Shown here piece after piece: positions 23,830-63,064 of a DNA stretch of 64,000 bases; position 1 is the stretch's first letter, and the number at the start of each line of letters is the position of its first letter. A program made the position numbers and the translations under genes. The stretch spans positions 124,001 to 188,000 of IMG/VR virus record IMGVR_UViG_3300009108_000751; one strand, written 5' to 3'. The notes beneath the pieces were generated by a model. That model was not told the DNA's origin. It worked only from the letters and a program-made list of their open reading frames with translations, and made no database searches.

Positions 23830-24495
23830 ATGGCTAAAGTAGTAAAGAGATTTAGACCGAAATACGTGAAGCGTCTGAGAGACCGCCCGTCAGGCATAGG
23901 ACAGACGGGTGCTAGCGCAACTTCAGATCGTCAAAATCCACCAGACATTCATCGTCTAGGTTGGGCCCCAAGGCCCTTTCCAAGATCGGGAATGACAGGC
24001 GAGCCTAATAGTTCGATTATGGGCAGAATGGGATCTGGCACACTCTCAGCATACACTGATACTGATCGAGAAGAGTTTGAAGATCAGTCTGGCATGCCTG
24101 GAAAAGGCGGGAACTATAAGAGTGATATGACAAGACAGTATATTAGCAAACTAAAGGCGCGCCCAGTAATTGGATTACCTGTAGGCCCTATCGGAGAATC
24201 AGAGCTTCGCGAAGTAATACGAGGAATGATAGCCGATCTCAACGAAGACCCCATGGGAAGAGAAGCTTTCAATTATGAGATGCTTAGAAGCCAAGAAGAA
24301 GACGACGAAGAAGAGGACGACGAAGATGATCTTGATGAGTTCTCTGGGGCAGGTGCAGTCGCGGGATTTACACTACCTTTAGGCGCTTCCAATCACCCGT
24401 CTACCCTGAAATCTCGAGGAGATTTTACTGCCAAAATGTACGGCGGAGAGCGTGTGAGAACTATTAAATTACAGCGAATGAAATTGACTGATTAA
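23830..24495 (+). CDS. Hypothetical late protein, probably head-internal
   Basis: Carries 'ESELREVIRGMI' helix, an acidic tract and 'LDEFSGAGAVAG..LPLG'. Confidence 0.6.
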   Translation: MAKVVKRFRPKYVKRLRDRPSGIGQTGASATSDRQNPPDIHRLGWAPRPFPRSGMTGEPNSSIMGRMGSGTLSAYTDTDREEFEDQSGMPGKGGNYKSDMTRQYISKLKARPVIGLPVGPIGESELREVIRGMIADLNEDPMGREAFNYEMLRSQEEDDEEEDDEDDLDEFSGAGAVAGFTLPLGASNHPSTLKSRGDFTAKMYGGERVRTIKLQRMKLTD

Positions 24496-24498
24496 TCA

Positions 24499-24527
24499 TT
24501 GAACATCCTTGCATGCTAGGTTAGAAT
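24499..24527 (+). promoter_or_regulatory. sigma70-like promoter TTGAAC-N17-TAGAAT
   Basis: Spacing counted; upstream of SSB. Confidence 0.7.
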
Positions 24528-24559
24528 ACACCTGACCATCAAGCTACAAGGAGAAAAAG

Positions 24560-25366
24560 ATGGCTATTGATTTTGATGCGATTCGTCGCAAGGTTGCTCA
24601 ACTTTCTGGCAACGGACGTCGAGGCTCTGCCTTTTGGCGCCCAGAAGAGGGTGAGCACACCGTTCGGATTGTGCCCTTCACCGATAACGACGGGCAACCT
24701 TTTAAAGAGCGTTGGTTCTACTACAATGTAGGTGAGAACCGCGGCATTCTGGCACCGAAGCAGTTCGGCAAGCCCGATCCCATTCAGGAGCTGATCAACA
24801 AGCTTCGTGATGAAGGCTCGCCCGAGTCGGCTGAGCTCTGCAAGCGCCTCTATCCCAAGATGCGTGCATACGCTCCGGTTGTTGTCCGCGGCGAAGAAGA
24901 CAAGGGCACCCAGCTCTGGTCGTTCGGCAAGATGGTCTACCAGGACATCCTCAACATTATGCTTGACCCCGACTACGGTGATATCACGGATCCTCTAGAA
25001 GGTCGTGACATCAAGGTGACCCTGTCCAAGCAGCCTGGTCAAAACTGGGCCAAGACGTCAGTCATGCCTCGAGGTAAAGCAACTAAGCTTTCCGGTGACG
25101 ACGACAAGATTAAAACGTGGACTTCTACCATTCCTAACTTGGATGAGATCTATTCTCTTGAGTCGTATGAAGAGATTGAAAAGAAAGTCAATGACTGGCT
25201 TAACGGCTCTTCAGCGGCAGACGACGACGGCATGACCGGCGGGTCCTCCACCAAGACTACAACTACAAGTGCTCCCACTACTGAAAGCACTACCAAAACC
25301 ACCACTGAGTCGAAGTCATACACTTCACTCGATGACGCGTTCGCTGATCTACTCGGCGACGACTAG
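24560..25366 (+). CDS. Single-stranded DNA-binding protein (T4 gp32-like)
   Basis: 'FWRP..G...VRIVP', 'LWSFGK', 'DITDP.EGRDI', acidic tail 'DDAFADLLGDD'. Confidence 0.85.
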   Translation: MAIDFDAIRRKVAQLSGNGRRGSAFWRPEEGEHTVRIVPFTDNDGQPFKERWFYYNVGENRGILAPKQFGKPDPIQELINKLRDEGSPESAELCKRLYPKMRAYAPVVVRGEEDKGTQLWSFGKMVYQDILNIMLDPDYGDITDPLEGRDIKVTLSKQPGQNWAKTSVMPRGKATKLSGDDDKIKTWTSTIPNLDEIYSLESYEEIEKKVNDWLNGSSAADDDGMTGGSSTKTTTTSAPTTESTTKTTTESKSYTSLDDAFADLLGDD

Positions 25367-25374
25367 GAGAAGAG

Positions 25375-27960: not shown

Positions 27961-27970
27961 GAGGTTCTAC

Positions 27971-29395: not shown

Positions 29396-29398
29396 AAG

Positions 29399-37822: not shown

Positions 37823-38779
37823 ATGAAAACGCTACCACAGTTGTTCCAGATCCAGGACCAGTTCTCAGAACTATTCCAAAAGAAGGATGACCTTTCCTTG
37901 GAGGAGAGGGAGCGGCTAACACAGGAGTTCTCTCTAGCACTCCACAGTGAGGTGTCAGCCCTGATCAGTGAGATCAACTTTAAGAACCATCATCAGGATC
38001 GTAAGCAGGTGGTGGAGAACAGCATCCTTTTCGAGGGCGTTGATGTCTTCCGATATCTCTTAGCTATCTTAAATCTCTGGGGCTTCAGTGCAGAGGATTT
38101 CTCGCAGGCTTTCGACGACAAGGAGAACTACCTCCAGGTCAAGTATGTCAAGAACGCGCAGAAGTGGCAAGGCCAACCGGTCATCCTCGTGGATGCCGAC
38201 GATGTGATTGTGGAGTTCCGGAAGGGCTACAGTGAGTATCTTAATGCTATGGAAGGCATCGATGTTGACGTCAACTCCAAAGAATATTATTTCACCAACG
38301 GCATTCCAAAGGACCGCTACAATCCTGAGCAACTATTCCAGGATTTCATCGATCAGCGACGCCTCAGAGATTTAGAGCCTATCACGCCCACAATTCAAGC
38401 AATCAACGACTTGTACGACCAGGGCTATTGGATCCAGATTCTTACAGCTAGACCTGACTGGAACAAAACATGCCAGTATGACACTTATACTTGGCTTGAA
38501 AATAGCGGCCTAAAATTCCACAAAATTGACTTTTCGCCTGAGAAGATGATTTGGGCTGCAAATAGTGAGTATTACGATTCTGAGTCGATTGTGTGCGCTA
38601 TTGATGATAGTTCCAAGCACACTATGGAATATGCTAAGCATGGGATCAAAGTGGCATCGCCAGTCACGCCTTATAACGAGGAGTTGCGAGGGGTAGAGAA
38701 CGTCATTATGTTCGAGACAAAGCAAGAACTTGCTGATATCATTAAACAGTTCTCACTCCGGCGCATATTTAGCGTATGA
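37823..38779 (+). CDS. Fusion of an all-alpha NTP-PPase (MazG-like) and a HAD 5'(3')-deoxyribonucleotidase
   Basis: N-terminal 'SEVSAL....NFK.H', 'FEGVDVFRY'; C-terminal 'LVDADDVI', 'ILTARP', 'T..WL', 'AIDDS'. Confidence 0.75.
   Translation: MKTLPQLFQIQDQFSELFQKKDDLSLEERERLTQEFSLALHSEVSALISEINFKNHHQDRKQVVENSILFEGVDVFRYLLAILNLWGFSAEDFSQAFDDKENYLQVKYVKNAQKWQGQPVILVDADDVIVEFRKGYSEYLNAMEGIDVDVNSKEYYFTNGIPKDRYNPEQLFQDFIDQRRLRDLEPITPTIQAINDLYDQGYWIQILTARPDWNKTCQYDTYTWLENSGLKFHKIDFSPEKMIWAANSEYYDSESIVCAIDDSSKHTMEYAKHGIKVASPVTPYNEELRGVENVIMFETKQELADIIKQFSLRRIFSV
38764..38773 (+). promoter_or_regulatory. Putative late promoter (catatttagc)
   Basis: ATATTTA immediately before the start of 38776. Confidence 0.55.
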
Positions 38780-39447
38780 TGCGTATTACAGTTGGACAAT
38801 TACGAACCCTTATAAAGGAAGCAATGCAGGAGCTGAATCCTGATCTTGACCCAGATTGCAAGAGCTTTGCAGTATTTGATTTCGATGAGACGCTGGCACT
38901 GACGGATTCGAAAATTTTGATAACAGATGACCAGGGAAAAAAGATCCGATCTCTTACCCCCGCGCAGTATGCTCTTTATGTTCCCGAGCCGGGAGAGAAC
39001 TTTGACTTTAGTGAATTTGAAATTGTCAAAGACGGTAAACCAACTGCTTTGATGGATGTTCTGCGAGATGTGGCTGCCTGCGGAACCACCGCCGCGGCCA
39101 TTTTAACAGCTCGAGGCCCTAAATCACAAGACCCTATTAGAGAGTTTCTTGCAGACATGGGGGTAAAATTGCAGATAATCGACACTGTAAACACCTCAGA
39201 TCCCCAAGCCAAAGCCCGGAAGATAAAAGGCTACGTTAGATCTTATAGCCCACAAGTCTTGCACTTTTTTGAGGATTCACCTAAGAATCTCGCTGCAGTA
39301 AAGAAGATGGCAGAGTCTGATCGTGAATTTGAGAACGTAGATGTGATTTTGCATAAGATGGTGGATGGCAACAAGGTAGACGTCGAGCACGTCGTGTATA
39401 AAGGATTAAGCGCAATCGCAGCTCCTGAAGATTCAAAACACATTTGA
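38776..39447 (+). CDS. HAD-family phosphatase with N-terminal 'LRTLIKE' tag
   Basis: 'VFDFDETL', 'ILTARG', 'K', 'FFEDSPKN'. Confidence 0.8.
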   Translation: MMRITVGQLRTLIKEAMQELNPDLDPDCKSFAVFDFDETLALTDSKILITDDQGKKIRSLTPAQYALYVPEPGENFDFSEFEIVKDGKPTALMDVLRDVAACGTTAAAILTARGPKSQDPIREFLADMGVKLQIIDTVNTSDPQAKARKIKGYVRSYSPQVLHFFEDSPKNLAAVKKMAESDREFENVDVILHKMVDGNKVDVEHVVYKGLSAIAAPEDSKHI

Positions 39448-41624: not shown

Positions 41625-41758
41625 TGAGAAAGACCCTACTGTTACTCTTTGCTTTTGGTTTAATGGCATCGTGTGTTCATAAGCCTAGGGTTACTATCCA
41701 AGGGTGGCGTCTAGTGCTTGATTGCGACCCCCAGGAACCTGCTTGCGAAGAGTTTTAA
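41624..41758 (+). CDS. 44-aa predicted lipoprotein (below ORF-track cutoff)
   Basis: GTG overlaps the upstream TAG; MRKTLLLLFAFGLMAS-C lipobox; translated by hand. Confidence 0.6.
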   Translation: MRKTLLLLFAFGLMASCVHKPRVTIQGWRLVLDCDPQEPACEEF

Positions 41759-41778
41759 GATTTAACAGGAGAAATAAA

Positions 41779-42336
41779 ATGAAATTCTTAAAAAATACAA
41801 TCACACACCTTGCACTAGCTTTTATGATTTTAGCTGGTGCTCCATCAACAGCAATGGCCGATGACCATGCTGTTGATATCACCGGAGACAGCGCGGACTG
41901 GAAAAAGCGTTCAGGCCTTCGGTTTGGGTATAACTACCTTAGTAACGGAGATAAACCCACTAATGGTGAAGAGGCAAAGCTTCGTAGCCCGCATATGTTT
42001 GCCATAGGCTATGAGCTTCAACAGACTATGTCAGGCGGCGACTGGTTAGACATCTTGTTTATCCAGAACGTTACCATTAGCGGCCTAGAGCAGAGTGTCA
42101 TTGCACCTTCTGCAAATGTTTTGGTGGGCTTTGAGATTAATGACACGCTTCAGCTAGCTGTAGGTGGCAACCTCTCGGTCTATGACCCATCTCCGGACGG
42201 AAACTATATCCACCTTGTAACTGCTTTGGGCTTTACAGCTGCCGCAGGAAAGCTGAGTGTTCCACTTCATCTTGTGTATGTTCCTGACGTTAACGGGTTC
42301 TGGCGGTTTGCGATCACCACCGGCGTGAACTGGTAG
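41779..42336 (+). CDS. Secreted outer-membrane beta-barrel-like protein 1
   Basis: SD aggag, signal peptide ending AMA, alternating beta-strands, C-terminal 'TTGVNW'. Confidence 0.6.
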   Translation: MKFLKNTITHLALAFMILAGAPSTAMADDHAVDITGDSADWKKRSGLRFGYNYLSNGDKPTNGEEAKLRSPHMFAIGYELQQTMSGGDWLDILFIQNVTISGLEQSVIAPSANVLVGFEINDTLQLAVGGNLSVYDPSPDGNYIHLVTALGFTAAAGKLSVPLHLVYVPDVNGFWRFAITTGVNW

Positions 42337-42346
42337 GAGAAGAACG

Positions 42347-46625: not shown

Positions 46626-46635
46626 CATATTTAGA
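46626..46635 (+). promoter_or_regulatory. Putative late promoter (catatttaga)
   Basis: ATATTTA upstream of 46650. Confidence 0.65.
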
Positions 46636-46649: not shown

Positions 46650-47783
46650 ATGGGCGGTGCAGCTGGACATATGGCACATCCTTTCGATCTTCCCGCAGTT
46701 CGAAATGGAAAAGACCTGATCAAGTTCTTTGACGACGCGTCAGAATACCTTGCCAATAATGAGTCGAGCGTAAAGATCGACGGCGTCAATGTAAGCTTTA
46801 AGCTCGTCGACGGGCCGAACGGCAAAGAGTTCGCGATGGATCGTGGAAGCTTAAGCCCGCTGGATATCGGTGGCATCACTCGAGCGAAACTTGACCAACG
46901 CTTTCCAGAGGGTCACGGTATGATCGCGGCAGGAAACGAGATGCTCGATCTGCTTAACACTGCACTCCCGGACATTCAATCAGAGCTTGAAGAGCTCGGA
47001 ATGTACGACGATCCGACAATGTTCCTAAACACGGAGTATGTTTCAGGCAAGACCAATGTGACAGATTACGACCAGAAGTTTCTGGCCATTCACGGTCTCA
47101 ACCAGTTCTACGAGAAGATATCACGCATCAAGAGTAAAGCGCGTCGACCAGGCGCTCCACGACCGGAAGGGGTAAAAGCTCCTAGTGCGGAAGTAGCATA
47201 TGACAAATCCGTCATGAAGCGTCTTATTGACAAGCTTGGAGCTGCAGCCAAGAAGCAAGGCTTCGAGGTTTACGGTGATGTCCCGGCTGCTCTCAAAGGA
47301 GATGCTCAGACTGCTGATTTCTCCGGCACTCTCTCGTCGCCGTTTGAGGTGGTGAGGTCCGAGGGCGAAGCGGAAACTAAACCCTTGTCCCAATGGCTTC
47401 AGGCAGCAAACCACCCGGGAGTTGAAAAGATAACTTTAGGTAGCGGCAAGAAGGTGAATGCTCTCAGCAAAGAGGTCTATATGTCCATTATCGATGGAGT
47501 GCCCGTTGATGAGCTTGTCCCAGACTCAGGCCAACAGCAGACTGCCATTGACGCAGCAGTCATCTACCATGCTACTCGAATGCTAGGAAACGATATCCTT
47601 GATGTGCTTACCTCACCAATGGGCGATGTTCGCGCTCACGAAGGTGTGGTTCTCCGAGACGAGCGCTTTGGTTCACGCCCAGTAAAGATCACGGGTGATT
47701 TTATCGTAGGTGGCTTGGAATCTGCGTTCCAGAAGAACGAAAGCCTTCTCAGGAACTACGTTAAAGCTATTCTTAAATCTTAA
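46650..47783 (+). CDS. Ligase-like covalent nucleotidyltransferase-fold protein (DUF6267-like) with C-terminal tag
   Basis: 'GHMAHPFD', motif I 'VKIDG.N', 'NTEYV', 'HEGVVLR', 'PVKITG'; ends 'ESLLRNYVKAIL'. Confidence 0.6.
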   Translation: MGGAAGHMAHPFDLPAVRNGKDLIKFFDDASEYLANNESSVKIDGVNVSFKLVDGPNGKEFAMDRGSLSPLDIGGITRAKLDQRFPEGHGMIAAGNEMLDLLNTALPDIQSELEELGMYDDPTMFLNTEYVSGKTNVTDYDQKFLAIHGLNQFYEKISRIKSKARRPGAPRPEGVKAPSAEVAYDKSVMKRLIDKLGAAAKKQGFEVYGDVPAALKGDAQTADFSGTLSSPFEVVRSEGEAETKPLSQWLQAANHPGVEKITLGSGKKVNALSKEVYMSIIDGVPVDELVPDSGQQQTAIDAAVIYHATRMLGNDILDVLTSPMGDVRAHEGVVLRDERFGSRPVKITGDFIVGGLESAFQKNESLLRNYVKAILKS

Positions 47784-48451
47784 TCGATCGCGGTTCGGAT
47801 GAACGCGCGCAACAGGCTTTCCTGTAAAGCTTTCCCAGATAGGATGTCAAAGATCGCCTGCTTTGAAGCATCACTCAGCTGGAAGGGAAGCATGTCTTTA
47901 AATGCCTCTTCATTCCCGTCAACCAGGTGGCGCCGCATATCGGTGCCGCTTACTGGGACAGTTTCATTGCGATCAAGGGCGACTTTGTCCAGCTTCTCAA
48001 GTACGAAATCTTGATCCAAATACCTCAGCAACTGTTCTTCGCTGTAGTTGTTTTCGATATCAACTGGGTCCGAGTAGATAGTAAAGTGATCTTCAGAGTT
48101 TTGCTCAGAGGAATTCTGTAGAAGCTCATACGCTTTGCGAATAGGCGCGCCCCCGGTGCCTAGAAGATGAAGCGTGACGTTGCTAGGTAGTATTTTGCCT
48201 AGATGATCCTCCCAGACTTTTCGCATGTCATCTCCGTAGATCGGGTGCACCCCGGGCTTCGGTACTTCGATTTTTCTTGCGCCCTGCTTGACCGTCCGCG
48301 TGTCGCTTGGATCTTTAATCTTTCTAACGCCCCTGCTAGACAGAGAGACGAAGAGCTCCACTTTGTCGTTTTCCTTTGCAGCCTTTTCGACCATAGCATG
48401 ATGCCCGGCGTGATAAGGCTTAAAACTACCTGCGACTATTCCGACTTTCAT
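47780..48451 (-). CDS. HIGH-type nucleotidyltransferase (cytidylyltransferase-like) with C-terminal tag
   Basis: 'GSFKPYHAGH', 'VSGT.MR'; ends 'ESLLRAFIRTAID'; the only clear minus-strand gene. Confidence 0.85.
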   Translation of the reverse strand: MKVGIVAGSFKPYHAGHHAMVEKAAKENDKVELFVSLSSRGVRKIKDPSDTRTVKQGARKIEVPKPGVHPIYGDDMRKVWEDHLGKILPSNVTLHLLGTGGAPIRKAYELLQNSSEQNSEDHFTIYSDPVDIENNYSEEQLLRYLDQDFVLEKLDKVALDRNETVPVSGTDMRRHLVDGNEEAFKDMLPFQLSDASKQAIFDILSGKALQESLLRAFIRTAID

Positions 48452-48465: not shown

Positions 48466-48475
48466 CATAAATATT
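48466..48475 (-). promoter_or_regulatory. Putative late promoter on the minus strand (aatatttatg)
   Basis: Reverse complement has ATATTTA upstream of the SD and ATG at 48451. Confidence 0.6.
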
Positions 48476-48988: not shown

Positions 48989-51900
48989 GTGTCATTTGAC
49001 GATTTCAAGAAACCTAATCGATTCGTAGGCATGCACGGCCACGATGGTTATTCCACTTACGATGGCCTAGGATACCCAGCAGATCACCTGGACTTTGTCT
49101 TGGAGAACGGCATGGATGCCCTCTCTATTACCAACCACGGTAACTGCAACTCCCTCCCTTTCCTCTGGAAGCACGGCGAGAAACTACGCAAGCAAGGTCG
49201 AAATGTTAGAACCATCTCAGGATGTGAGTTCTATTTTGTTCCATCGCTTAAGGAGTGGGAGAAGCAGTATCAAAACCATCGAGATCGAGTAAAGGCGGAA
49301 CGGGATGCTAAAAAGCAAGAAGCCCTATCTAAGATCGATGTCAATAAAGATGCCGAGGATGATGAGGCTCAGGGGGGCCACGTTATTGAGGATGAGGAAG
49401 CCAGCAAGACTTACGACCCCGACGCCTTGGATTGGAAGCGCCGGTATCACTTAGTTGTCACAGCGCGGAACTTGACCGGCCTGCAAAACCTCTTCAGGTT
49501 AATCAAGCGCTCGTACAAGGAAGGGTTTTATCGGTTTCCACGCATTGACTTTGAAATGTTGAAGGAGCACGGGGAAGGGCTCCAGGTGTCGTCTGCCTGT
49601 CTGGCAGGCATCGCCACTGGAACCGTCTTTAAGGGGCAGGCTCACAAGAAAGATTTTGAGGAGATCATGCGGGATCTCGGTAATCTCACAGATCGCTTTC
49701 ATGATGCGCTAAGTCCGGATCGTTTCTTCTGGGAGATCCAGTTCAACTCCTTGGACGCACAACACACCACAAATCACTACCTGCTAGAGATGGCCAAACG
49801 CCACAACCTTCCTCTCATCGCCACCGCAGACAGTCACTATCCACGACCGGACCTGTGGGAAGCCCGGGAGCTCTACAAGAAGCTCGGCTGGATGCGTGAT
49901 AAGCCCACCCCTCTCCCCACCTTCGACGAGCTCAAGTGTGAGCTTTATCCCAAGAACGCGGAACAGATGTGGGAGGAGTACGGAAGGCATTACACTCAGC
50001 ACGACTTCTACAATGGCACCGAAGACATGGTCCGGCAAGCAATCGAGCGTACACATGACCTGACCTGGAACGAGTTCGAGGACGTCTGGATCGACAGCAA
50101 AGCCAAGCTGCCTAACTACGCCAATCCCCAGCGTTCACACGCGTGCTATCCCGAGCCGCCTGAGGACACCCCGTTCCAGCAGCTAGCTAAGCTGGTCAAG
50201 GCGGCGATGATCCGCGAGGGCCTAGGTGACAAGCCCGAGTACGTCGCGCGTGTCAAGGAGGAGATGGACGACATCAAGTTCCTGGGCTTCGAGAACTACT
50301 TCCTGACCATGTATGACGTGTTCCATCTCGCAGAGAAGAAGACGCTGTTCGGGCCGGCCCGTGGTTCGGGTGGTGGCTCGCTGGTCAACTACCTGCTGGG
50401 CATCACGCAGATCGACCCCCTCCCGTTTGGCCTGCTGTGGTCGCGCTTCCTGGGCCGCCACCGCACGTCCTGGCCTGACATCGACTCTGACGCGGGAGAC
50501 CGCGACGCGCTGATCGATGCAGCTCGAGTCCTCTTTGGAGAGGATGCGGTCATTCCCGTGTCCAACTTCAACACGCTGAAACTCAAGTCCATCGTTAAGG
50601 ATGTGGCCAAGTTCTACCAGATCGACTTCGCCGAAGTGAACCGGATCACTGGTCCCCTCCAGGGTGAGGTGGAACCCTTCGCCCGAGATGCCAACACCGA
50701 GAAGTCCGTCTTTGTGCTCAAGCACGACGACTGTATGAAGTACTCCGATAACTACCGGACCTTTATGGAGAAGTATCCGCACGTGGAGAAGCACGTGAGC
50801 ACGTTGTTTATGGAACAACGAGCCATCGGCCGACATGCTGGGGGCGTCCTCATCGCTGATGAGAATGAGTTAGCCGAGACCATGCCCCTGATCGGTGTGC
50901 GTGGTGAGCTCCAGACCCCCTGGACCGAGGGTATGAACTTCCGGAACCTGGAAGACAACGGTTTCATCAAGTTCGACTTCCTCGGCCTAACCCTAATGAA
51001 GGATGTGGAGAACTGCATCAAGCGCGTCCTGCGGACGCCTGACAATCCTCAGCCTAGCTTTGCGCAGATTAAAGAGTATTTTGACGAGCATCTTAACTGC
51101 CGATATGTCAAGCAGGATGACCCTAAGGTGTGGGAGCACTCCTATCACCATCAGAATTTCGCCCCGGGCCTCTTTCAGTTTACGGCTCAGGGAGCTCGCA
51201 ACTTCTGTCAGCAGGCTAAACCCGATAACATTGAGGAACTAGCGGCCATTACTGCTATCTATCGCCCGGGCCCACTCAAGGCTAATGTCCACATCAAGTA
51301 CGTGGAAGCCAAGAACGACCGGGACAACATTGTCTACGACCACCCCGTGATCGAGCGCGTCCTCGGCCCCACCTGCGGTTTCATCACCTTTCAGGAGCAG
51401 TTCATGACCCTGGCAGTCGAGCTCGCAGGGTTTACTCCCGGTGAGTCTGACAAGATGCGTAAGACGCTGGTGAAGAAGTCCTTAGACACCATCGGTAAGA
51501 AGGGTTCCGAACGTGACCAGCTGCGTAAGCAATTCGTGGAAGGTGCTCAACGCCTCCATGACCTAGATCCCAAGATCACTCACGCGCTTTTCGATAAGAT
51601 CGAGTTCTTCTCCCTTTATGGTTTCAATAAGTCGCACGCCGTGGCTTACGCCATCGATAGCTACTACGCCGCCTGGCTCTACACCTACCATCCCAAGGAG
51701 TGGATCGCTACTGTGCTCCAGTCAGAGAACAACTCCCCTAACGGTCTGGCTAAGACCATCCGGGAGGTCAAGGTCCTGGGTTACAAGTTTGCACCATCGG
51801 ATATCAACTACTCCGGTGAGGAGTGGGATTATAATCCTGAGCGAAAAGCCTTTGTACCTCCCCTGTCTTCTATTAAAGGTGTTGGTGGTAAAGCGATGGA

Positions 51901-52879
51901 GGAGATCATCGAGCATCGTCCTTTCCGCAATCTACGCGAGCTCTTCTTTAATGAGGAGGGTAAGTGGCGTCACTCCAAGGTAAATAAGACCTGCTTCGGT
52001 GCGCTCTGTCAGATTGAGGCTTTCACCTCGCTGCAGGAGTTCCAAGACGGTGACCTTGACAACCATCGCCAGCTCTACCACTTGATCGTTGATAACTACG
52101 AGCAGATCCGAAAGTCGGATGAAGGTAAGAAGAAGTGGTTGGATAAGCTAGAAGCCATCGGTGACAAGAACCGCGAGGAGGTCGATAAGATCATCTCCGT
52201 CTACACCAAGACCAAGATGCCTGAGATGGAGGAAGCCGCTCGATCTCTCGTCCTTGATGCTAATGTGATGGACTGGACTTACATCGATCACTTAGTAGAT
52301 TCCCTCAAGACTATCGAGCACCCTAAACCTCGACGACAGCTCCAGATCGATCGCTGCTTCGAACGGATTGCAAAGAACGGCGATCGTCGTGAAAAGATCC
52401 TTGAGCGCATCGATGCTTTCTTCGATCTAGACGAGGCAATGGGTTCTGTTGCGCACATTGAAGACTGGTCGCGTGATGAGAAGATTCGTCTCTACCAGGA
52501 GATCACGTCTGCTATCAATAATGCGTTGGTCTTTCCTGCCGAGGTGATGAAGCGAATCACCAAGACTGATATGCCCTCTGTCTGTGAGATCCCTGGCGGG
52601 GAGAAGGCTGTTGCTTGGGGTTGCGCCGCCGAGATCCAGAAGAAGACCACCAAGAAGGGTAAAGAGTTCTATCGCCTTCGAATGATCGATGACCAGAACA
52701 GATCTTGCTGGCTTCGAGTATGGGGTAAGTTCTTCGAGTGGGGTGAGGAGCGCGGACAAAAGCTCTACTACGAACCACCCGATTTCTCCTACTGGTTGAT
52801 GGAGGTGGATGTAGATCCTAACTGGGGCGCTTCCACCGCAGCCTTTAAGATGCGCAGGATCCCCCTAGCCGATGATTAA
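48989..52879 (+). CDS. dnaE: DNA polymerase III alpha subunit (family C)
   Basis: PHP 'H.H..YS..DG', 'DSHY'; 'GPARGSGGGSLV.YLLGIT', 'PDIDSD', 'HAGG', 'KFDFLGL', 'YRPGP', 'YGFNKSHA'. Confidence 0.96.
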   Translation: MSFDDFKKPNRFVGMHGHDGYSTYDGLGYPADHLDFVLENGMDALSITNHGNCNSLPFLWKHGEKLRKQGRNVRTISGCEFYFVPSLKEWEKQYQNHRDRVKAERDAKKQEALSKIDVNKDAEDDEAQGGHVIEDEEASKTYDPDALDWKRRYHLVVTARNLTGLQNLFRLIKRSYKEGFYRFPRIDFEMLKEHGEGLQVSSACLAGIATGTVFKGQAHKKDFEEIMRDLGNLTDRFHDALSPDRFFWEIQFNSLDAQHTTNHYLLEMAKRHNLPLIATADSHYPRPDLWEARELYKKLGWMRDKPTPLPTFDELKCELYPKNAEQMWEEYGRHYTQHDFYNGTEDMVRQAIERTHDLTWNEFEDVWIDSKAKLPNYANPQRSHACYPEPPEDTPFQQLAKLVKAAMIREGLGDKPEYVARVKEEMDDIKFLGFENYFLTMYDVFHLAEKKTLFGPARGSGGGSLVNYLLGITQIDPLPFGLLWSRFLGRHRTSWPDIDSDAGDRDALIDAARVLFGEDAVIPVSNFNTLKLKSIVKDVAKFYQIDFAEVNRITGPLQGEVEPFARDANTEKSVFVLKHDDCMKYSDNYRTFMEKYPHVEKHVSTLFMEQRAIGRHAGGVLIADENELAETMPLIGVRGELQTPWTEGMNFRNLEDNGFIKFDFLGLTLMKDVENCIKRVLRTPDNPQPSFAQIKEYFDEHLNCRYVKQDDPKVWEHSYHHQNFAPGLFQFTAQGARNFCQQAKPDNIEELAAITAIYRPGPLKANVHIKYVEAKNDRDNIVYDHPVIERVLGPTCGFITFQEQFMTLAVELAGFTPGESDKMRKTLVKKSLDTIGKKGSERDQLRKQFVEGAQRLHDLDPKITHALFDKIEFFSLYGFNKSHAVAYAIDSYYAAWLYTYHPKEWIATVLQSENNSPNGLAKTIREVKVLGYKFAPSDINYSGEEWDYNPERKAFVPPLSSIKGVGGKAMEEIIEHRPFRNLRELFFNEEGKWRHSKVNKTCFGALCQIEAFTSLQEFQDGDLDNHRQLYHLIVDNYEQIRKSDEGKKKWLDKLEAIGDKNREEVDKIISVYTKTKMPEMEEAARSLVLDANVMDWTYIDHLVDSLKTIEHPKPRRQLQIDRCFERIAKNGDRREKILERIDAFFDLDEAMGSVAHIEDWSRDEKIRLYQEITSAINNALVFPAEVMKRITKTDMPSVCEIPGGEKAVAWGCAAEIQKKTTKKGKEFYRLRMIDDQNRSCWLRVWGKFFEWGEERGQKLYYEPPDFSYWLMEVDVDPNWGASTAAFKMRRIPLADD

Positions 52880-53961: not shown

Positions 53962-53963
53962 TC

Positions 53964-55386: not shown

Positions 55387-55396
55387 CATATTTATT
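55387..55396 (+). promoter_or_regulatory. Putative late promoter (catatttatt)
   Basis: ATATTTA upstream of 55423. Confidence 0.65.
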
Positions 55397-55410: not shown

Positions 55411-55462
55411 CGGAGTGTTTTTATGAATCTCACTGAAAATGATTTACGCCTTCTGGTTCGCA
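55411..55462 (+). repeat. 52-bp RBS plus N-terminal tag module, copy 1
   Basis: 49/52 nt identical to 56098-56149. Confidence 0.9.
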
Positions 55463-56049
55463 GTATTCTACGGGAAGAATCAGCAAAACCTGGCCCGTCC
55501 AGCGTGAACAAAGCAGATTTTTATCAGAAGCTCCCTGTGGAGAAGCAAGATGATCTGCAAAAAGCTGTCGATAAGTTTGCTAAAGCACAAGTCCCCACGC
55601 TTGTCAATGTCGCAAAAAACATGTCAGGAAAGTCAGGTAAAAAAAGCTCAGAAGTACTCGCATCTTTTCTAAAAAATCCTACGCTTAAAATTCCTCCAAT
55701 GAAGCTAGGAAGAAATTTAAAACTAGGTGGTGAGTTTGGAGCTGGTAATAATTCAAAAGTAAAAGCTGTCGTTGAAAAGGGAAAGCTCAAAGGGTTTACG
55801 TTCTCAGGCGAGCTTGGCCCAGGCTTGGAAATTAAAAATGTTTTCGTACAGACCCCTACGATCTCTCTCAGCAAAGAAGCGACAGCCGAGCTAGACATGG
55901 GTCTAACGCAGGACATGGCTAGCGCAAAAGCAGGCCTAAACTATAAGATTCCAGGCGGATCTATAACAGGTGCAGCAGCAGGAAATATAGCTCTCGATTC
56001 ATCCAAGTCCGATTATGAATTCTCTATTGGCTTAAGCAAGAAGTTCTAA
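55423..56049 (+). CDS. Late hypothetical protein, N-terminal tag and beta-rich C-terminus
   Basis: 'MNLTENDLRLLVRSILREE'; ends 'EFSIGLSKKF'. Confidence 0.7.
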   Translation: MNLTENDLRLLVRSILREESAKPGPSSVNKADFYQKLPVEKQDDLQKAVDKFAKAQVPTLVNVAKNMSGKSGKKSSEVLASFLKNPTLKIPPMKLGRNLKLGGEFGAGNNSKVKAVVEKGKLKGFTFSGELGPGLEIKNVFVQTPTISLSKEATAELDMGLTQDMASAKAGLNYKIPGGSITGAAAGNIALDSSKSDYEFSIGLSKKF

Positions 56050-56097
56050 AATGAGAAAATCTACAGGAATTTGTTGCATATCTATTAAAATAGATCA

Positions 56098-56149
56098 CGG
56101 AGTGTTTTTATGAAGCTCACTGAAAACGATTTACGCCTTCTGATTCGCA
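56098..56149 (+). repeat. 52-bp RBS plus N-terminal tag module, copy 2
   Basis: See 55411-55462; preceded by the late-type motif catatctatt at 56077. Confidence 0.9.
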
Positions 56150-57516
56150 ACATCCTGCGCGAGCAGGACGAAGAAGAAGTTGAAGAAGAAACCGAAGAAG
56201 AGGCTGAGGCCGAAGAAGCGGTCGTTGAACCCGAAGTCAAAGAACCCGAGGTTGATCCTGAGCTCCAGTCCCTAGCAAAGGAATATGAAGACGCAAGTTC
56301 ATTTAAAGCGAAAGCTGAGGCTATAGCTAATATCTTGCGTCGCCCTGAGTTCTTTGGAACTGATATCGTAGGGCCCACCAAAGGGAAGCAGGTAAAAGGC
56401 AAGAATTCCATGCGGTTCGGAGTAGGTGCAGGTGCAAAAGACAAGCATGATTTTAAAGACATCGCTGATAAGATCTATGCTGTCTTGGCTCCAGAAAAAG
56501 TAAATCCAGTTCGCGTGTTCGGTCCCGATACTGGCCCCAATGAGAGCGGAACTTACACATCTTATGTTCTTCCTGACCTGGACAACCTAATGTTCACGTT
56601 CGGAGGAGCAGGTGAGACATCTGGACAACGCAAAGGTGGCTACGAATATGAGATGAACGTGATCTTCCCGAACCTGAAGGATGCAGGTTTAGAAGCAGAG
56701 CTTGGCGCAGATAATACAATCTCAGATGTTTACGTTGTGACTAAGGATGGCAAGCTTGGTATTGAGGTAAAACTCCCTGACGCACAGCTCGGTGAACCCA
56801 CACTCAAGTATAATATTAAAGATAAATCTTTCTTCCCGTCAGTTGAGAAGGGCATTAACGTAGATGTAGCTAATCTGATCAATGCTGACGACACAAGCAC
56901 AGACGCTTATAACCGAATGGTGATTATTCGTGATAAGGTCAACACACAAAGATCAGCTGACGGAGAAGATTCTGAGCTTTCACCCTTCCAGGACATTATC
57001 GATAAGATCACTAGAGCCGAGTATGACCAGATTGTTAAGCCTGCCCTGCGCGCAGACACAGAAGCAGGAAGTGATATCAGCGGAGTGAAGATCGGTGAGT
57101 TTAAGATCGGTTCTGACCGCATGAGGGACTACTACCTTGGAAAGAAAGCAGGCCTAGTTCAAGTGAAGGGTAAGGGACTCTATCATTTGCATCCGGATTT
57201 TGAGATCAAGATTAAAGACGAGGATGGCAACGAGAAGAGAACCATCCTCTTCGACTTCAGTGATCAAGTCTCAGGCGGAGTCCAGTTTCGAAACATGAAG
57301 GGCAACCGATATGGCATCAGATCAGACACAAGAAGTGCTCCTCTTAAAAAGATCCGACAGTCCCCCATCGATCTTGACAGCGAAGCTGACAGAGAGGCAT
57401 TCGCAGCAGTTGTGCCTGACATGACCTTTCCAGATCCAAAATCTTTGATGGATGACAAATCCCTAGCAGAGTCAGTTCAAAACCGCTGGCAACTTTTGGC
57501 CGGCATAAAAGAATAA
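56110..57516 (+). CDS. Late protein with a putative PD-(D/E)XK nuclease domain, tagged at both termini
   Basis: 'MKLTENDLRLLIRNILRE', acidic tract, 'G.EYE', 'SDVYV.......IEVK', C-terminal 'ES..NRWQLLAGIKE'. Confidence 0.6.
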   Translation: MKLTENDLRLLIRNILREQDEEEVEEETEEEAEAEEAVVEPEVKEPEVDPELQSLAKEYEDASSFKAKAEAIANILRRPEFFGTDIVGPTKGKQVKGKNSMRFGVGAGAKDKHDFKDIADKIYAVLAPEKVNPVRVFGPDTGPNESGTYTSYVLPDLDNLMFTFGGAGETSGQRKGGYEYEMNVIFPNLKDAGLEAELGADNTISDVYVVTKDGKLGIEVKLPDAQLGEPTLKYNIKDKSFFPSVEKGINVDVANLINADDTSTDAYNRMVIIRDKVNTQRSADGEDSELSPFQDIIDKITRAEYDQIVKPALRADTEAGSDISGVKIGEFKIGSDRMRDYYLGKKAGLVQVKGKGLYHLHPDFEIKIKDEDGNEKRTILFDFSDQVSGGVQFRNMKGNRYGIRSDTRSAPLKKIRQSPIDLDSEADREAFAAVVPDMTFPDPKSLMDDKSLAESVQNRWQLLAGIKE

Positions 57517-57562
57517 ATTTCACCGCGTTGTGTTATAATCCATAGTAAGCAACGGAGAGAGC

Positions 57563-61420: not shown

Positions 61421-61435
61421 TAAGCTGAAAGAGTT

Positions 61436-61445
61436 CATATTTATT
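61436..61445 (+). promoter_or_regulatory. Putative late promoter (catatttatt)
   Basis: ATATTTA upstream of the 61464-63064 cluster. Confidence 0.65.
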
Positions 61446-61463
61446 ACAGCATGGGAGTGCTCT

Positions 61464-61748
61464 ATGTCTAATCCGCTTACTCACGAAAAAGTTTTGGCAA
61501 TCATCGCCGAGGAAAGACAAAAGATACAAGATGATCTTTGCAATAGCAAGAAGCACTCCCTAGGAAAGAAGGCAGATCTAATCAGCAAAGGATTACGAGT
61601 CTGCTGCAAGAAATCTAATAAGGATTACTACGTTGCCAAAAGGAAAAAAGTAGGCAAAAACATGATGTTCATACTGGTAGACCCAGAGGGAAATAGCCTA
61701 GATCCCATGCCAGCTGAACAACTTTTAAAAGGTTATAGGTTAGATTAA
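61464..61748 (+). CDS. Late hypothetical protein
   Basis: N-terminal 'LTHEKVLAIIAEE' helix. Confidence 0.65.
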   Translation: MSNPLTHEKVLAIIAEERQKIQDDLCNSKKHSLGKKADLISKGLRVCCKKSNKDYYVAKRKKVGKNMMFILVDPEGNSLDPMPAEQLLKGYRLD

Positions 61749-61749
61749 T

Positions 61750-62436
61750 ATGAAGAAGAAAGATGTGGCAAAAAATATCCGTGAATCTTTGGGTATGAGA
61801 AATACTGAGAGCCTCGATGAGGCGCTAGTAGTTCAAGCAAAGCCGTTTGCTATTCCAACAGAAGCCCTCTCAGGCGAAAACATTAGAAATCATTACAGCC
61901 TGTACGAGACTTACGCAAAAGATTTTAACAAAATAAGCGCAGAACTCGATGGTGCAGACAGATCTAATGCTTCATCAAATCACTCAGCGTTTAGAAGCTT
62001 GAAAATAGATGAAGTCTACAATTTAAATGCCACGTATTTGCACGAGCTTTACTTTGCTAACATCGGTGATTTGCAGAGCGAAATTACAATGGATACGCTT
62101 TCTTTCATGCGCCTTGAAAGAGACTTCGGTTCTTTTGACGCATGGCAAATGGATTTTCTTGCTTGCGCAAAGTCATCTCGCTGCGGCTGGGTTATCACTG
62201 GATTTAATGTTTTTACTCACACTTACATGAACTATGTTGTTGATCTTCATTCTCTTAACATGCCCGTTGGTGTCATTCCCGTAATTGTTCTGGATGTCTG
62301 GCAGCATGCTTACTACAAGGACTACTTAAAGGATGTATCTGCATATACAGTCAACATGATGAAGGAATTAAACTGGAACGTGATTGAGCAGAGGTTTGGG
62401 CGAACTGATAAGATCGCCCAGGTTATGAGAGGTTAA
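61750..62436 (+). CDS. Fe/Mn superoxide dismutase-like protein
   Basis: 'NHYSLY..Y', 'N...LHELYF', 'DFGSF..W', 'GW', 'LDVWQHAYY.DY'. Confidence 0.85.
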   Translation: MKKKDVAKNIRESLGMRNTESLDEALVVQAKPFAIPTEALSGENIRNHYSLYETYAKDFNKISAELDGADRSNASSNHSAFRSLKIDEVYNLNATYLHELYFANIGDLQSEITMDTLSFMRLERDFGSFDAWQMDFLACAKSSRCGWVITGFNVFTHTYMNYVVDLHSLNMPVGVIPVIVLDVWQHAYYKDYLKDVSAYTVNMMKELNWNVIEQRFGRTDKIAQVMRG

Positions 62437-62437
62437 G

Positions 62438-63064
62438 ATGAACGACAAAGATCTAAGAAAATTGATTGCAGAGGAATTTGCTGCAATAATATCAGAACAA
62501 GAAACTCAAGAAGTGCCTACAGGTGATGAACCTGATGTGCCTGCCCCAGATTCAGTAGATGTCCAGATTGATGAGCTTTTGCTGCAATATGAAAAGCTTT
62601 CTCTTCCTGACGAAGAAGAGGTTCTTGAAGAAGTTTTGACTACTACTTCTCTTCGGTTTATTTTAGAACAAGAAGAAGTTGATGTTGAAGTCGACGTCGA
62701 AGAAGAGGGCGAAGAAGAAGGCGACGATGAGGGTGGAGAAGAAGCTGAAGCTGAAGAGGAAGATGAAGAAGTAGAGGTTGAGGAAAAAATGCCTAAGCTT
62801 GACGTCATTACTTTTGCAACTAAAGTGGCACGCCTCGCAGAGATCCCTGAGAAGGTTTTAGATCTAAAAGACGCGATCATCAATCGCGCTATACATTATC
62901 TTCAGACAAATTACGATGAGAATGTCGCAAAAGAATTTGAGACTGCTCTAATGGACAAGTTTCAGCTGGCCGTGCCGGAAGAAGAAGTTGAAAAGCTTGT
63001 TGCTTCTGATTTACCCGCACCTCCAGCAGTTGGAGCAGGCCCAGGAGGCGGCGCCGGAGGCTGA
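62438..63064 (+). CDS. Acidic late protein, possibly head-internal or scaffold-like
   Basis: 'DLRKLIAEE', 'SVD.QID..L..YE', long Glu tract. Confidence 0.65.
   Translation: MNDKDLRKLIAEEFAAIISEQETQEVPTGDEPDVPAPDSVDVQIDELLLQYEKLSLPDEEEVLEEVLTTTSLRFILEQEEVDVEVDVEEEGEEEGDDEGGEEAEAEEEDEEVEVEEKMPKLDVITFATKVARLAEIPEKVLDLKDAIINRAIHYLQTNYDENVAKEFETALMDKFQLAVPEEEVEKLVASDLPAPPAVGAGPGGGAGG

Follow-up and report, generated by a model that had tools for sequence, protein, structure and literature searches.

Short amphipathic helices at the ends of unrelated late proteins as candidate prohead-targeting peptides in a Far-T4 phage

Why should proteins that otherwise appear unrelated begin or end with the same kind of short helix? 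In the window, by which we mean the whole 64,000-nucleotide stretch analysed here, from an uncultured, marine, 235-kb T4-like ("Far-T4") phage, an earlier note had quoted ten such peptides on late proteins and read them as one general "zip code" for entry into the head. All ten peptides were present at or near their genes, and nine lay in recurrent end-tags, the exception being KDVAKNIRESL in gene 61750 (genes are designated by their lowest coordinate). The single code gave way to at least three motif classes: an N-terminal class (N-tag), [KR]-[LI]-T-x3-L-[RK]-x-[LI]-[IV]-[RK]..E, and two C-terminal classes, R-W-x-x-L-A-G-I (C1) and E-S-L-L-R-x-x-[IV]-[RK]-x-x-I-L (C2). Helices of this amphipathic kind, with many L, R, I and E residues, are common.

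Two of these classes recur in the head module of the phage. The window opens inside a gp23-type major capsid protein gene (3' end at 5..514, plus strand), and the remaining head module, upstream of the window, was read from locus L084, which comes from a nearly identical phage, is contiguous with the window, and whose position 9529 corresponds to window position 1; gene calls in this and other related loci were crude, being the longest open reading frames. Pfam matched Gp23 at L084:8126-10042 (6.5e-75), and directly upstream lie a gp20-type portal (Portal_T4, 1.2e-76), a gp21-type prohead protease (Peptidase_S77, 6.4e-25) and an acidic scaffold, so that protease, portal and capsid protein of a T4-type head are all encoded. 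Between the protease and scaffold genes are encoded two small protein families of ~85 aa and ~140 aa, which by gene position are presumably head-core proteins. They resemble T4 gp67 and gp68 in gene position and size only; homology was not detected with hhalign (probability 0.3% and 0.1%). The N-tag is the conserved N-terminus of both families, represented by 24 and 18 unique N-terminal tag sequences. The protein in the scaffold position ends in R-W-x-x-L-A-G-[IL], 1–5 residues before the stop, in about 70 relatives, with R, W, L, A and G invariant among 54 unique tails, and two of these relatives, Flavobacterium phage immuto and Microcystis phage Mel-JY01, are in culture. Just before this tail stands a likely protease site, L-N-E-[GS]: [LIVM]-x-E occurred at -8..-6 from RW in 32/54 scaffolds, compared with a baseline of 5.2%. 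The protease itself ends in a conserved amphipathic helix, DRIDRIFNDILEW.

Position matrices for the N-tag and C1 were trained on head-module proteins of other phages only. With the N-tag matrix, four N-termini in the window (38776, 56110, 55423 and 61464) scored >=8, where 2000 shuffles gave an expectation of 0.002; the proteins singled out in the earlier note ranked at the top of the window, and every match lay at residues 2–4. The C1 matrix gave the C-terminus of the 56110 protein a score of 23.6, where maxima after shuffling were 7.3±2.7. Among 1131 proteins from the first set of loci plus the window, the pattern L[RK]..[IV][RK]..[ILM] occurred 43 times (10.5±3.1 after shuffling), and 36 of the 43 occurrences were at a terminus (3.1±1.8 after shuffling), an enrichment of four-fold overall and eleven-fold at termini. 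In a subsequent set, enlarged to 2041 distinct proteins, 75 had an N-terminal tag scoring >=8; with the ~140-aa head-core family excluded, these were mostly small and had no assigned function. N-tag and C-tag occurred together on L100:10637, L006:7478, L068:3740 and the 56110 protein of the window. What these otherwise unrelated proteins have in common is thus a short terminal peptide, at residues 2–4 or in the last 15 residues, and untagged homologues of tagged proteins exist. Pairwise similarity between tags was at noise level, with unrelated pairs reaching 12-mer BLOSUM scores of 35–46 and the two C2 tags of the window scoring about 29 by hand. Since pairwise similarity was no better than chance, the evidence rests on recurrence, terminal position and the independent matrices.

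The highest N-tag score in the window, 16.3, belonged to the N-terminus of the 38776 protein (MMRITVGQLRTLIKEAMQE; N-tag MMRITVGQLRTLIKEAMQEL, 38776..38835, plus strand). This HAD phosphatase-like protein (gene 38776-39447) matched phrog_415, polynucleotide kinase/phosphatase, at 3.8e-7; its HAD motif DFDET starts at about residue 35, and ATATTTA stands ahead of the gene at 38765-38771. MNLTENDLRLLVRSILREES (55423..55482, plus strand) opens a 208-aa protein without known function (gene 55423-56049), scoring 9.3 at residue 2, with ATATTTA at 55388-55394 ahead of the gene. MKLTENDLRLLIRNILREQD (56110..56169, plus strand), on a 468-aa protein (gene 56110-57516) preceded by ATATCTA at 56078-56084, scored 14.8, and the 55423 and 56110 N-termini both fit M[NK]LTENDLRLL[VI]R.ILRE. 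A weaker N-tag, MSNPLTHEKVLAIIAEERQK (61464..61523, plus strand; 8.2 at residue 4), lies on a 94-aa protein encoded by the first gene of the late-motif cluster 61464-63064, ahead of which ATATTTA was found at 61437-61443. Within the same cluster, the N-terminal MNDKDLRKLIAEEFAAIISE of an acidic 208-aa protein (62438..62497, plus strand) fits the N-tag core only, with a core-only score of 10.8, the second best in the window; gene 62438 lacks its own ATAT[TC]TA in the 60 nt ahead of it and follows 61464 and 61750 with gaps of <20 nt. Judged by their sequences, the N-tags of 38776, 55423 and 56110 and the C-terminus of 56110 are strongly supported as tags, and the N-tags of 61464 and 62438 moderately so.

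The 56110 protein is tagged at both ends. Its N-tag is followed by an acidic disordered linker, and its core is PD-(D/E)xK nuclease-like, with D206, E219 and K221 invariant and weak Foldseek matches to the HhaI and Hjc nucleases. The AF2 model places a helix at residues 5-21, a disordered segment at 18-47 and a globular domain at 50-446; the C1 tail is predicted as a detached helix (451-466, pLDDT 36). This C1 tag, SLAESVQNRWQLLAGIKE (57454..57513, plus strand), runs up to the stop codon and shares its motif with the scaffold C-terminus, reading NRWQLLAGIKE with L-A-E just before the tag. Members of the 56110 family carry C1, C2 or no tag at the same C-terminal position, with [LIV]-x-E before each tag.

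The N-tag matrix did not score the C2 tags, and none of them was found on a clearly head-module protein; their connection to the tag system is indirect, by way of this interchange with C1 and of the late motif. In the window, FQKNESLLRNYVKAILKS (47727..47780, plus strand) is appended, just before the stop codon, to an RNA-ligase-like nucleotidyltransferase (gene 46650-47783, with ATATTTA at 46627-46633 ahead of it). The protein has >478 viral homologues, most of which end in GLESAF.K, without a tag, exactly where the tag starts, and AF2 models residues 7-356 as a confident core and the tail, residues 357-377, as a helix of pLDDT <50. The second C2 tag, KALQESLLRAFIRTAID (47783..47833, minus strand), likewise ends at the stop codon of a cytidylyltransferase/NMNAT-like protein (gene 47780-48451; Pfam CTP_transf_like, phrog_395 and phrog_3462), ahead of which ATATTTA was found on the minus strand at 48468-48474. 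The two genes are convergent with a 4-nt overlap, and the DNA at their ends showed no strong palindrome. Near-identical C2-type C-terminal peptides occur in other phages (ETLRNYIKRIV and, up to the stop codon, SETLRNLIRKIL and SQLRSLIRMHLKTLI). The C-terminal ESLLRNYVKAILKS (46650) and ESLLRAFIRTAID (47780) thus appear to be tags supported by recurrence, not by a matrix. That most ligase-like homologues stop where the tag begins, and that AF2 predicts low-confidence helices off confident cores, indicates that the tags are add-ons.

Two of the quoted peptides were more doubtful. Gene 23830-24495 encodes a 221-aa protein that is mostly low-complexity and probably disordered, and its peptide is internal (PIGESELREVIRGMIADL, 24187..24240, plus strand). 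Residues E123, L126, R127 and I130 of the internal ESELREVIRGMI were invariant in 7 homologues, and this helix may, with some uncertainty, be regarded as a candidate internal docking helix. KDVAKNIRESL, in a Fe/Mn superoxide-dismutase-like gene of the 61464-63064 cluster (61750..62436, plus strand; Pfam Sod_Fe_C, 5e-17), had no matrix match and was not supported as a tag.

The motif upstream of the tagged genes is common to them and to structural genes and is distinct from TATAAT-type promoters. CATAT[TC]TA occurred 10 times in the window, all on the plus strand, compared with 3.1 expected, and 9/10 ATATTTA matches lay 10-45 nt before a start codon on the coding strand. ATATTTA was found before the tail sheath gene (4917..4923, plus strand), ahead of the tube gene (11255) and at 12961 and 34094, and ATATCTA at 608 and 1151; Pfam confirmed the sheath and the gp19-type tube, and in L084 the same ATAT[TC]TA motif stands ahead of the portal and scaffold genes. 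Its position suggests that ATATTTA is a late promoter. Beyond 22 kb in the window, six of the seven genes with ATAT[TC]TA <=60 nt upstream were tagged, compared with 2/41 others (Fisher p=1.5e-5). The proposal that this motif heads the tagged genes or their clusters is borne out there as an association, but it does not extend to gene 23830, upstream of which no canonical ATAT[TC]TA was found. Tail proteins behind the same motif carried no tags in the N-tag matrix and motif scans.

A precedent for such peptides is the capsid-targeting sequence (CTS) of T4, carried by IPI, IPII, IPIII and Alt (Mullaney & Black 1996; reviewed in PMC9026906 and PMC3012670). In both phages, otherwise unrelated proteins share a terminal peptide some 10-20 residues long, the head is of the gp20/gp21/gp22/gp23 type, and the genes of the cargo, candidate cargo in the Far-T4 phage, lie scattered away from the head module. 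The T4 peptide has at or beside its end an (L/I)-x-E, the cleavage motif of gp21 (PMC9026906). The supported tags of the window show sequences of this form (ILRE, LIKE, IIAE, LIAE, and LAE, LQE and IGE each followed by S), with the 46650 tag, which has K-N-E, as the sole exception; these are candidate cleavage sites, Glu being common in these helices. Alt, which is also processed C-terminally (PMC9026906), sets a precedent for propeptides at both termini. The two systems differ in sequence. The T4 IPI, IPII and IPIII N-termini (NC_000866; MKTYQEFIAE, MKTFKEFTS) scored -18 to -21 with the Far-T4 N-tag matrix, and the T4 CTS ending -IAE- was found only in 61464 and 62438. The Far-T4 system differs further in that its motifs fall into three or more classes, some of them purely C-terminal, in that one class copies the scaffold's own C-terminus, and in candidate cargo that includes sizeable enzymes. 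The earlier proposal of a portable terminal signal into the head on the T4 model gains strong circumstantial support from the gp21-type protease, from the same tags on head-module proteins, from the late motif and from the [LIVM]-x-E before the scaffold tail; the likeness to the T4 CTS does not reach the sequence.

On this evidence, the tags of this T4-superfamily ("Far-T4") jumbo phage are probably prohead-targeting peptides, CTS-like in action and unrelated to the CTS in sequence; by analogy with T4, tagged proteins would be packaged, cleaved after Glu and injected. Genes behind ATATTTA would be transcribed late in infection, along with the head and tail genes, and some of their products would bear a short amphipathic helix on a flexible linker modelled on a terminal helix of proteins in the phage's own head core. 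The N-tag would copy the N-terminus of the two small proteins whose genes lie between those of the protease and the scaffold, C1 the extreme C-terminus of the scaffold (RWxxLAGI), and C2 would be a C-terminal alternative (ESLLRxx[IV][RK]xxIL) interchangeable with C1. Through these helices, the cargo may co-assemble with the scaffold core or bind the inner face of the gp23-type shell, after which the gp21-type protease would cut after a nearby (L/I)-x-E and free the cargo inside the head; there it would stay, probably to enter the next host along with the DNA. Candidate cargo would include the Pnkp-type HAD phosphatase, the RNA-ligase-like, cytidylyltransferase/NMNAT-like and PD-(D/E)xK nuclease-like proteins, and several small or acidic proteins without known function.

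The helices might instead hold enzymes together, with split ligase-like, cytidylyltransferase-like and HAD pieces reassembling in the infected cell into a non-covalent complex through a coiled coil or helical bundle. Relatives L006-L024 contain ligase-cytidylyltransferase fusions, L007 and L008 encode polyproteins of >1300 aa, and L039 has an apparent ligase-like plus HAD-like fusion (uncertain, with stop codons in frame); the ligase-like tag of the window lies exactly at the fusion junction, and the convergent partners 46650 and 47780 both end in near-identical C2 tags. Such a complex would leave unexplained the N-tag on two head-module proteins, C1 on the scaffold, the tags on dozens of unrelated small proteins and the late motif common to tagged, head and tail genes. 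Fused relatives, moreover, still end in a C-terminal amphipathic helix, DEVMRLIMERGILR, at the stop codon, so that the tag is kept even where there is no partner to recruit, and we consider this explanation unlikely. Alternatively, tagged proteins may enter proheads as assembly-only extras of the scaffold or core, to be degraded by the protease and expelled before DNA packaging, with nothing delivered. T4 gp22, gp67 and gp68 behave in this way (PMC9026906), and the acidic, low-complexity, scaffold-like character of several tagged proteins (62438, the 56110 linker and the ~260-aa proteins with two tandem tags beside the ligase fusion in relatives) would fit it. Folded enzymes such as the HAD phosphatase and the ligase-, cytidylyltransferase- and nuclease-like proteins, however, have no obvious assembly role, and tags on flexible linkers outside confident cores have the layout of the T4 internal proteins that are retained and injected; we rate this explanation as quite unlikely.

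A role unconnected with the capsid, in which the helices bind membranes or serve late proteins as general aids to solubility or expression, is very unlikely. Membrane targeting is a classic task of terminal amphipathic helices, MK starts many tags, and T4 proheads begin assembly at the membrane, but conserved Glu stands beside Arg and Lys on the polar faces, the conserved positions (L-T-x3-L-R; R-W-x-x-L-A-G-I) exceed mere amphipathicity, the tail proteins behind the late motif lack tags, and a scaffold is not expected in the membrane. Chance resemblance among common helical peptides picked by eye would agree with pairwise 12-mer scores within the background of unrelated protein pairs, with the failure of 61750 in every test and with the weakness of 61464. 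It is largely refuted already by the terminal enrichment in independent contigs and by both matrices from other phages, which lead back to the same window proteins and the same terminal positions in them (4 vs 0.002; 23.6 vs 7.3±2.7); with clear conservation within families besides, we regard chance as most improbable.

Targeting to the prohead, the reading that we prefer, has parallels beyond T4. The coat-binding C-terminus of P22 gp8 is a helix-turn-helix, the herpesvirus scaffold tail is cut off by the maturation protease, and in P22 virus-like particles the coat-binding segment, fused to foreign proteins, loads them into capsids. The Far-T4 scaffold is similar in that its extreme C-terminus is its most conserved part, with the likely protease site before it, and by analogy this tail may bind the capsid protein. 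It differs in that at least four unrelated proteins borrow the tail, at either end; in the P22 and herpesvirus systems, we know of no natural set of non-scaffold proteins that do so. Encapsulin targeting peptides (GGDLGIRK, GSLGIGSLR, (PEKR)LTVGSLRR; PMC10960027) are likewise short, portable and usually C-terminal, and through them enzymes of many kinds attach to the inside of an HK97-fold shell. A loose sequence likeness over 5-8 residues, the C-terminal LAGIK against LGIRK, and RITVGQLRT or KLTxxxLR against LTVGSLRR, is a lead only, and encapsulins differ in having no scaffold, protease or DNA. Duda et al., in 2013, reportedly found that the C-terminal tail of the HK97 maturation protease suffices to carry a protein into the prohead, and the Far-T4 protease likewise ends in a conserved amphipathic helix; HK97, however, has a delta domain in place of a separate scaffold, and one cargo, not a family of tagged proteins. 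Iyer et al., in 2017, are said to have described polyvalent proteins of phages and conjugative elements, multidomain and proposed to be packaged, injected and self-processed. L007 and L008 resemble these in fusing ligase-like and cytidylyltransferase-like domains to long extensions, which contain an HExxH motif and internal tag-like helices; no MuF or other polyvalent-protein marker domain was found, and in the window, by contrast, the domains are separate genes with tags. If the tags do act as prohead-targeting peptides, the proteins that such phages inject would be predictable from sequence alone.

IMGVR_UViG_3300009108_000751 is a 235,681-bp viral contig, 64 kb of which make up the window. 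DNA and protein queries against cultured phages found no close cultured relative, whether by DNA or by the tagged proteins; the capsid protein alone gave cultured relatives, distant ones, the nearest being Flavobacterium phage immuto, Microcystis phage Mel-JY01, and Rhodothermus phage RM378. By sequence, the phage is assigned to the "Far-T4" group, whose members abound in freshwater and marine viromes (PMC4360716). The window opens within a gp23-type major capsid gene, the first open reading frame (5–514) being the 3′ end of that gene, and window position 1 corresponds to position 9529 of a near-identical phage contiguous with it (locus L084), which provides the upstream 9.5 kb. In this upstream part, genes for the terminase large subunit and a T4-type portal (PF07230, 1e-76) are followed by those for a 282-aa protein, a Peptidase_S77 prohead protease (6e-25), and four small proteins; a 476-aa acidic protein then occupies the scaffold position, ahead of the capsid protein (PF07068, 6.5e-75). 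Tail proteins are encoded at 1–22 kb of the window, with a gp19-type tube and two adjacent sheath paralogues (4960–8091 and 8128–11232; 1043 and 1034 aa) that both match Pfam Phage_sheath_1C and have conserved blocks in common, e.g. FPWFAPAGF.RG. The remainder serves replication and nucleotide metabolism (gp32, RecA, ribonucleotide reductase, ThyX, a DnaE-type PolIII alpha, and a PolA fragment). The polymerases lie at 48989–52879 (DnaE-type PolIII alpha, 1296 aa, with PHP, NTPase, finger, and HHH domains) and 22021–23211 (a short 396-aa family-A fragment), and no T4 gp43-type polymerase was seen within the 64-kb window.

Several further features were observed along the way. Two paralogous small genes lie 3′ of the capsid gene (642–1061 and 1185–1682); their leaders (515–641 and 1062–1184) have an identical region in common (...catatctaatagtaggcccgtcacattgcataagg...), each preceded by a terminator-like G+C-rich hairpin with a T run. 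The 42347 protein (window 41722–42874; genes are named by their starts) has a signal-peptide-like start (MRYLLIFSLLLPAAAQA) and the end ...MYFW and resembles an outer-membrane beta-barrel protein; its 41722 neighbor ends in ...TGVNW, and the tagged 55423 protein ends in ...GLSKKF. About 190 bp to 1.2 kb beyond the window end, a related locus encodes a tubulin/FtsZ-like GTPase (L003:18767–19789; Pfam Tubulin, 1.2e-7, 32.6 bits, slightly below the gathering score of 33) adjoining small membrane-like proteins.

The head module itself carries the motifs of interest. In about 70 relatives, the scaffold-position protein ends in R-W-x-x-L-A-G-[IL], 1–5 residues from the stop, on scaffolds that are otherwise variable (410 to 716 aa), with R, W, L, A, and G invariant across 54 unique tails; immuto and Mel-JY01, both cultured, have scaffolds ending in ...SRWQKLAGIIK and ...ERMKKLAGIVK, respectively. 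The end of the window 56110 protein, ...NRWQLLAGIKE, has the same form (motif C1, R-W-x-x-L-A-G-I). Two small families, with genes between those of the protease and the scaffold, have a second motif at the N terminus (N-tag, [KR]-[LI]-T-x3-L-[RK]-x-[LI]-[IV]-[RK]..E). Members of the ∼140-aa family start M-K-L-T-[RK]-x-x-L-K-x-[IL]-V-K-E-C-L-V-E-I-L-x-E-G (MKLTRAKLKDLIKECIVEVLAEG in the 138-aa L084 member) and end ...W-A-x-L-A-F, and those of the ∼85-aa family start K-L-T-x3-L-[KR]-[KR]-I-I-x-E-E. The gp21-type protease (L084:3809–4432 and relatives) ends in a conserved amphipathic helix, [DN]-R-[IV]-[DN]-R-[IVL]-[FLM]-N-[DES]-I-L-x-W, which may be its own targeting tail; targeting tails have been reported on other prohead proteases. 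Directly 5′ of the scaffold gene, many relatives encode a small basic protein (L087:6786–7025, L089:6591–6854, and others), annotated in Mel-JY01 (L165:6146–6373) as ribosomal protein S21 (RpsU).

An earlier note had proposed that one general amphipathic tag, usable at either terminus, loads unrelated late proteins into the capsid, and all of the peptides quoted there were found in the sequence. We built a position matrix solely from the N termini of the two small head-module families of other phages and scanned the 63 window proteins with it. Proteins named in that note ranked as the top four (38776, 16.3; 56110, 14.8; 55423, 9.3; 61464, 8.2), all with matches at residues 2–4, and the next N-terminal score was −2.4. 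Four N termini scored at least 8 vs 0.002 expected, with a maximum of 1 in 2000 shuffles. The 62438 protein matched the core of the N-tag with a score of 10.8, and KDVAKNIRESL (61750), also put forward as a tag, gave no matrix match. With a matrix made from the scaffold tails, the 56110 C terminus scored 23.6 vs a shuffled maximum of 7.3±2.7. The scaffold tail, the head-module N-tags, and these matrix matches tie the tags to head assembly at the level of sequence.

A pairwise 12-mer comparison of all window proteins did not raise the tags above background (unrelated pairs, 35–46), save for the 55423/56110 paralogues, so that the case rests on recurrence and on the independent models. The window and 78 related viral loci together gave 1131 distinct proteins, in which L[RK]..[IV][RK]..[ILM] occurred 43 times vs 10.5±3.1 in shuffled proteins, and 36 of the 43 matches fell within the first 60 or last 30 residues vs 3.1±1.8 in shuffles. 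Many unrelated proteins start with M-K-L-T-K-S-Q-L-K-Q-I-I-K-E-E or similar; a tagged 73-aa immuto protein (L164:5454–5675) starts MKKSQIVKAVQEVLEEM, and a 604-aa protein just beyond the window end (L003:20259–22073) starts MAVKITETALREFVRNMLLEE. N- and C-terminal tags occur together on window 56110, L100:10637–11434, L006:7478–8443, and L068:3740–4282. Pfam and PHROGs gave no family for most tagged proteins, and none of their families covered the tags. The tags are real and portable; they form three classes and not a single one.

The third class, C2 (C-terminal E-S-L-L-R-x-x-[IV]-[RK]-x-x-I-L), is found on the ligase-like 46650 protein and the cytidylyltransferase-like 47780 protein (minus strand), whose convergent genes overlap by 4 nt. 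An inverted repeat giving the same peptide on both strands could produce such a pair as a palindrome artifact; the DNA there holds only 8–11-nt imperfect arms, which places the likeness at the protein level. Of the viral homologues of the ligase-like domain, which number more than 478, most end in ...GLESAF.K, where the 46650 tag starts, and in the AF2 model of 46650 the core (7–356) is confident (mean pLDDT 89) and the terminal helix (357–377) is of low confidence. The C2 tags on both proteins are add-ons. Homologues of 56110 have the same globular end, ...FPD[AP]KSL..., followed by L[AS]ES...RWQLLAGIKE (P0001–P0009 and P0021–P0024), by [LIV]SE[AT]LR.LIRKIL and close variants (P0013, P0016, and P0020), or by no tail (P0014 and P0017–P0019). 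Since C1 and C2 occupy the same position, the two C-terminal classes are interchangeable in this family, which is C2's strongest link to the head. Similar C-terminal peptides occur elsewhere (ETLRNYIKRIV... and, beside a head module, a protein ending in SQLRSLIRMHLKTLI).

In T4, gp21 cleaves after L/I-x-E, the first 10 residues of IPIII are the capsid-targeting sequence, and Alt undergoes processing at its two ends (PMC9026906). Here, [LIVM]-x-E lies at −8 to −6 from the scaffold RW in 32 of 54 tails vs a 5.2% baseline, and [LIV]-x-E precedes both C-terminal classes in the 56110 family. The supported cargo tags end in or follow such a site, with the exception of 46650 (K-N-E). The capsid protein N terminus has a conserved L-[RK]-E followed by a Gly-rich segment, at a position homologous to the T4 gp23 cleavage region. 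Sites of the (L/I)-x-E type near the scaffold tail, the cargo tags, and the capsid N terminus would fit processing. A further motif, in which an acidic tract leads into a Gly/Ala-rich S-G-A-G-A-V-A-G-[FYH], seemed to mimic the capsid cleavage site; simple patterns gave no consistent register across proteins, and the ligase-like N-terminal GGAAGHMAHPFD, considered as part of it, is an invariant part of the enzyme itself. The motif was therefore set aside as evidence. The mostly low-complexity 23830–24495 protein has a basic N terminus (KRF.PKY[IV]KR) and, after an acidic tract, an invariant D-E-F-S-G-A-A-A-V-A-G-[YF]-T-L-P-L-G; this segment loosely resembles Gly-rich segments after tags elsewhere, a likeness not definable precisely.

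The tags also go with a putative late motif, ATAT[TC]TA, as the earlier note had suggested. CATAT[TC]TA occurs 10 times in the window, always on the plus strand, vs 3.1 expected, a count attained in 0 of 100 shuffles. Nine of 10 ATATTTA sites are on the coding strand, 10–45 nt ahead of a start codon; they head the genes for sheath, tube, 12990, and 34104 and the tagged 38776, 46650, 47780 (minus strand), 55423, and 61464. ATATCTA lies upstream of 642, 1185, and 56110, and L084 has the motif before the portal gene, one head-module gene, and the scaffold gene. Beyond 22 kb there are 48 genes, and a tag is present on 6 of the 7 that have the motif vs 2 of the 41 that lack it (Fisher p = 1.5e-5); if matrix-supported N-tags alone are counted, the figures become 4 of 7 vs 0 of 41 (p = 1.8e-4). 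Genes with TATAAT-like sequences upstream (22021, 39502, 44234, 48989, and 57563) all lack a tag. The exception is 23830, where the internal helix is conserved and the canonical motif is absent.

The candidate cargo includes enzymes. The 38776 protein, a HAD phosphatase, is akin to the Pnkp phosphatase family (phrog_415, 3.8e-7); 46650 has a KxDG motif and weakly matches T4 RNA ligase 1 best in structure, followed by other ligases and capping enzymes; 47780 is cytidylyltransferase/NMNAT-like. Together they suggest a putative RNA-repair-like module. The ligase-like and cytidylyltransferase-like proteins, encoded separately in the window (46650–48451), are one fused protein in relatives (L006–L024), and in two of these (L007:8539–12990 and L008:10001–13942) the fusion is extended to 1300–1480 aa, has tag-like helices in its interior as well as an HExxH motif, and is reminiscent of polyvalent proteins. 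Because domains of the ligase-like, cytidylyltransferase-like, and HAD group are fused in relatives, they probably act together, possibly in RNA repair. In the 56110 protein, an N-terminal helix is followed by a disordered acidic linker and a globular core, and the C-terminal helix is detached; the core, with an invariant D...E-x-K, weakly matches HhaI, Hjc, and other PD-(D/E)xK nucleases, and an ESM Atlas search gave a weak lead only (R.HinP1I at rank 79). Acidic proteins of ∼260 aa with two tandem N-terminal tag copies and a conserved STGINVLEDLLKKIIPVLE block are encoded directly 3′ of the fusion (L006:11943–12743, L007:12990–13772, L010:11923–12744, L014:11989–12762, and L080:3302–4081); their weak similarity to window 62438 (BLASTP 3e-5) is largely one of acidic composition.

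Taken together, capsid loading by the tags is the best-supported explanation, and we regard it as somewhat favored. The tag system is likened to the T4 capsid-targeting sequence in its working and not in its sequence. Sequence relatedness to the T4 signal was not borne out, as the N termini of T4 IPI, IPII, and IPIII (NC_000866) scored −18 to −21 with the N-tag matrix. Matching motifs were absent from T4 gp22, gp67, and gp68, and no homology was detected between the two small head-module families and gp67/gp68. The tag motif strings were not found in the literature searched, and the Far-T4 genomics paper contains no scaffold, prohead, or promoter discussion. To our knowledge, a scaffold's own C-terminal tail reused as a cargo tag has only engineered precedents, in P22 virus-like particles. 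Among natural systems, the encapsulin targeting peptide (PMC10960027) comes closest. A bolder joint reading, by analogy and in our estimate improbable, is that the scaffold tail RWxxLAGI(K) and the cargo tags would dock in the inner face of the gp23-type HK97-fold shell as encapsulin targeting peptides (…LGIRK, LTVGSLRR) do in encapsulin shells; Far-T4 phages would then keep a scaffold-derived mechanism ancestral to encapsulin cargo loading, and the three motifs would be a code, readable from metagenomes, for the injected-protein set of abundant, almost uncultured marine phages.

Phage proteins injected with the DNA act ahead of any phage gene expression, which makes them prime counter-defence candidates. 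Beyond T4 and a few giant phages, they are, as far as we know, detectable only through proteomics on phages in culture. A loading code that is readable from sequence, with the phage's own scaffold and head-core proteins as its anchor, would permit injected proteins to be predicted from metagenomes. The predicted cargo, which includes a Pnkp-type phosphatase along with RNA-ligase-like, cytidylyltransferase/NMNAT-like, and nuclease-like proteins, suggests that RNA-repair and nuclease activities are delivered ready-made at infection. The tags would be new handles for loading phage capsids with foreign proteins, and they may connect phage scaffolding with encapsulin cargo loading.
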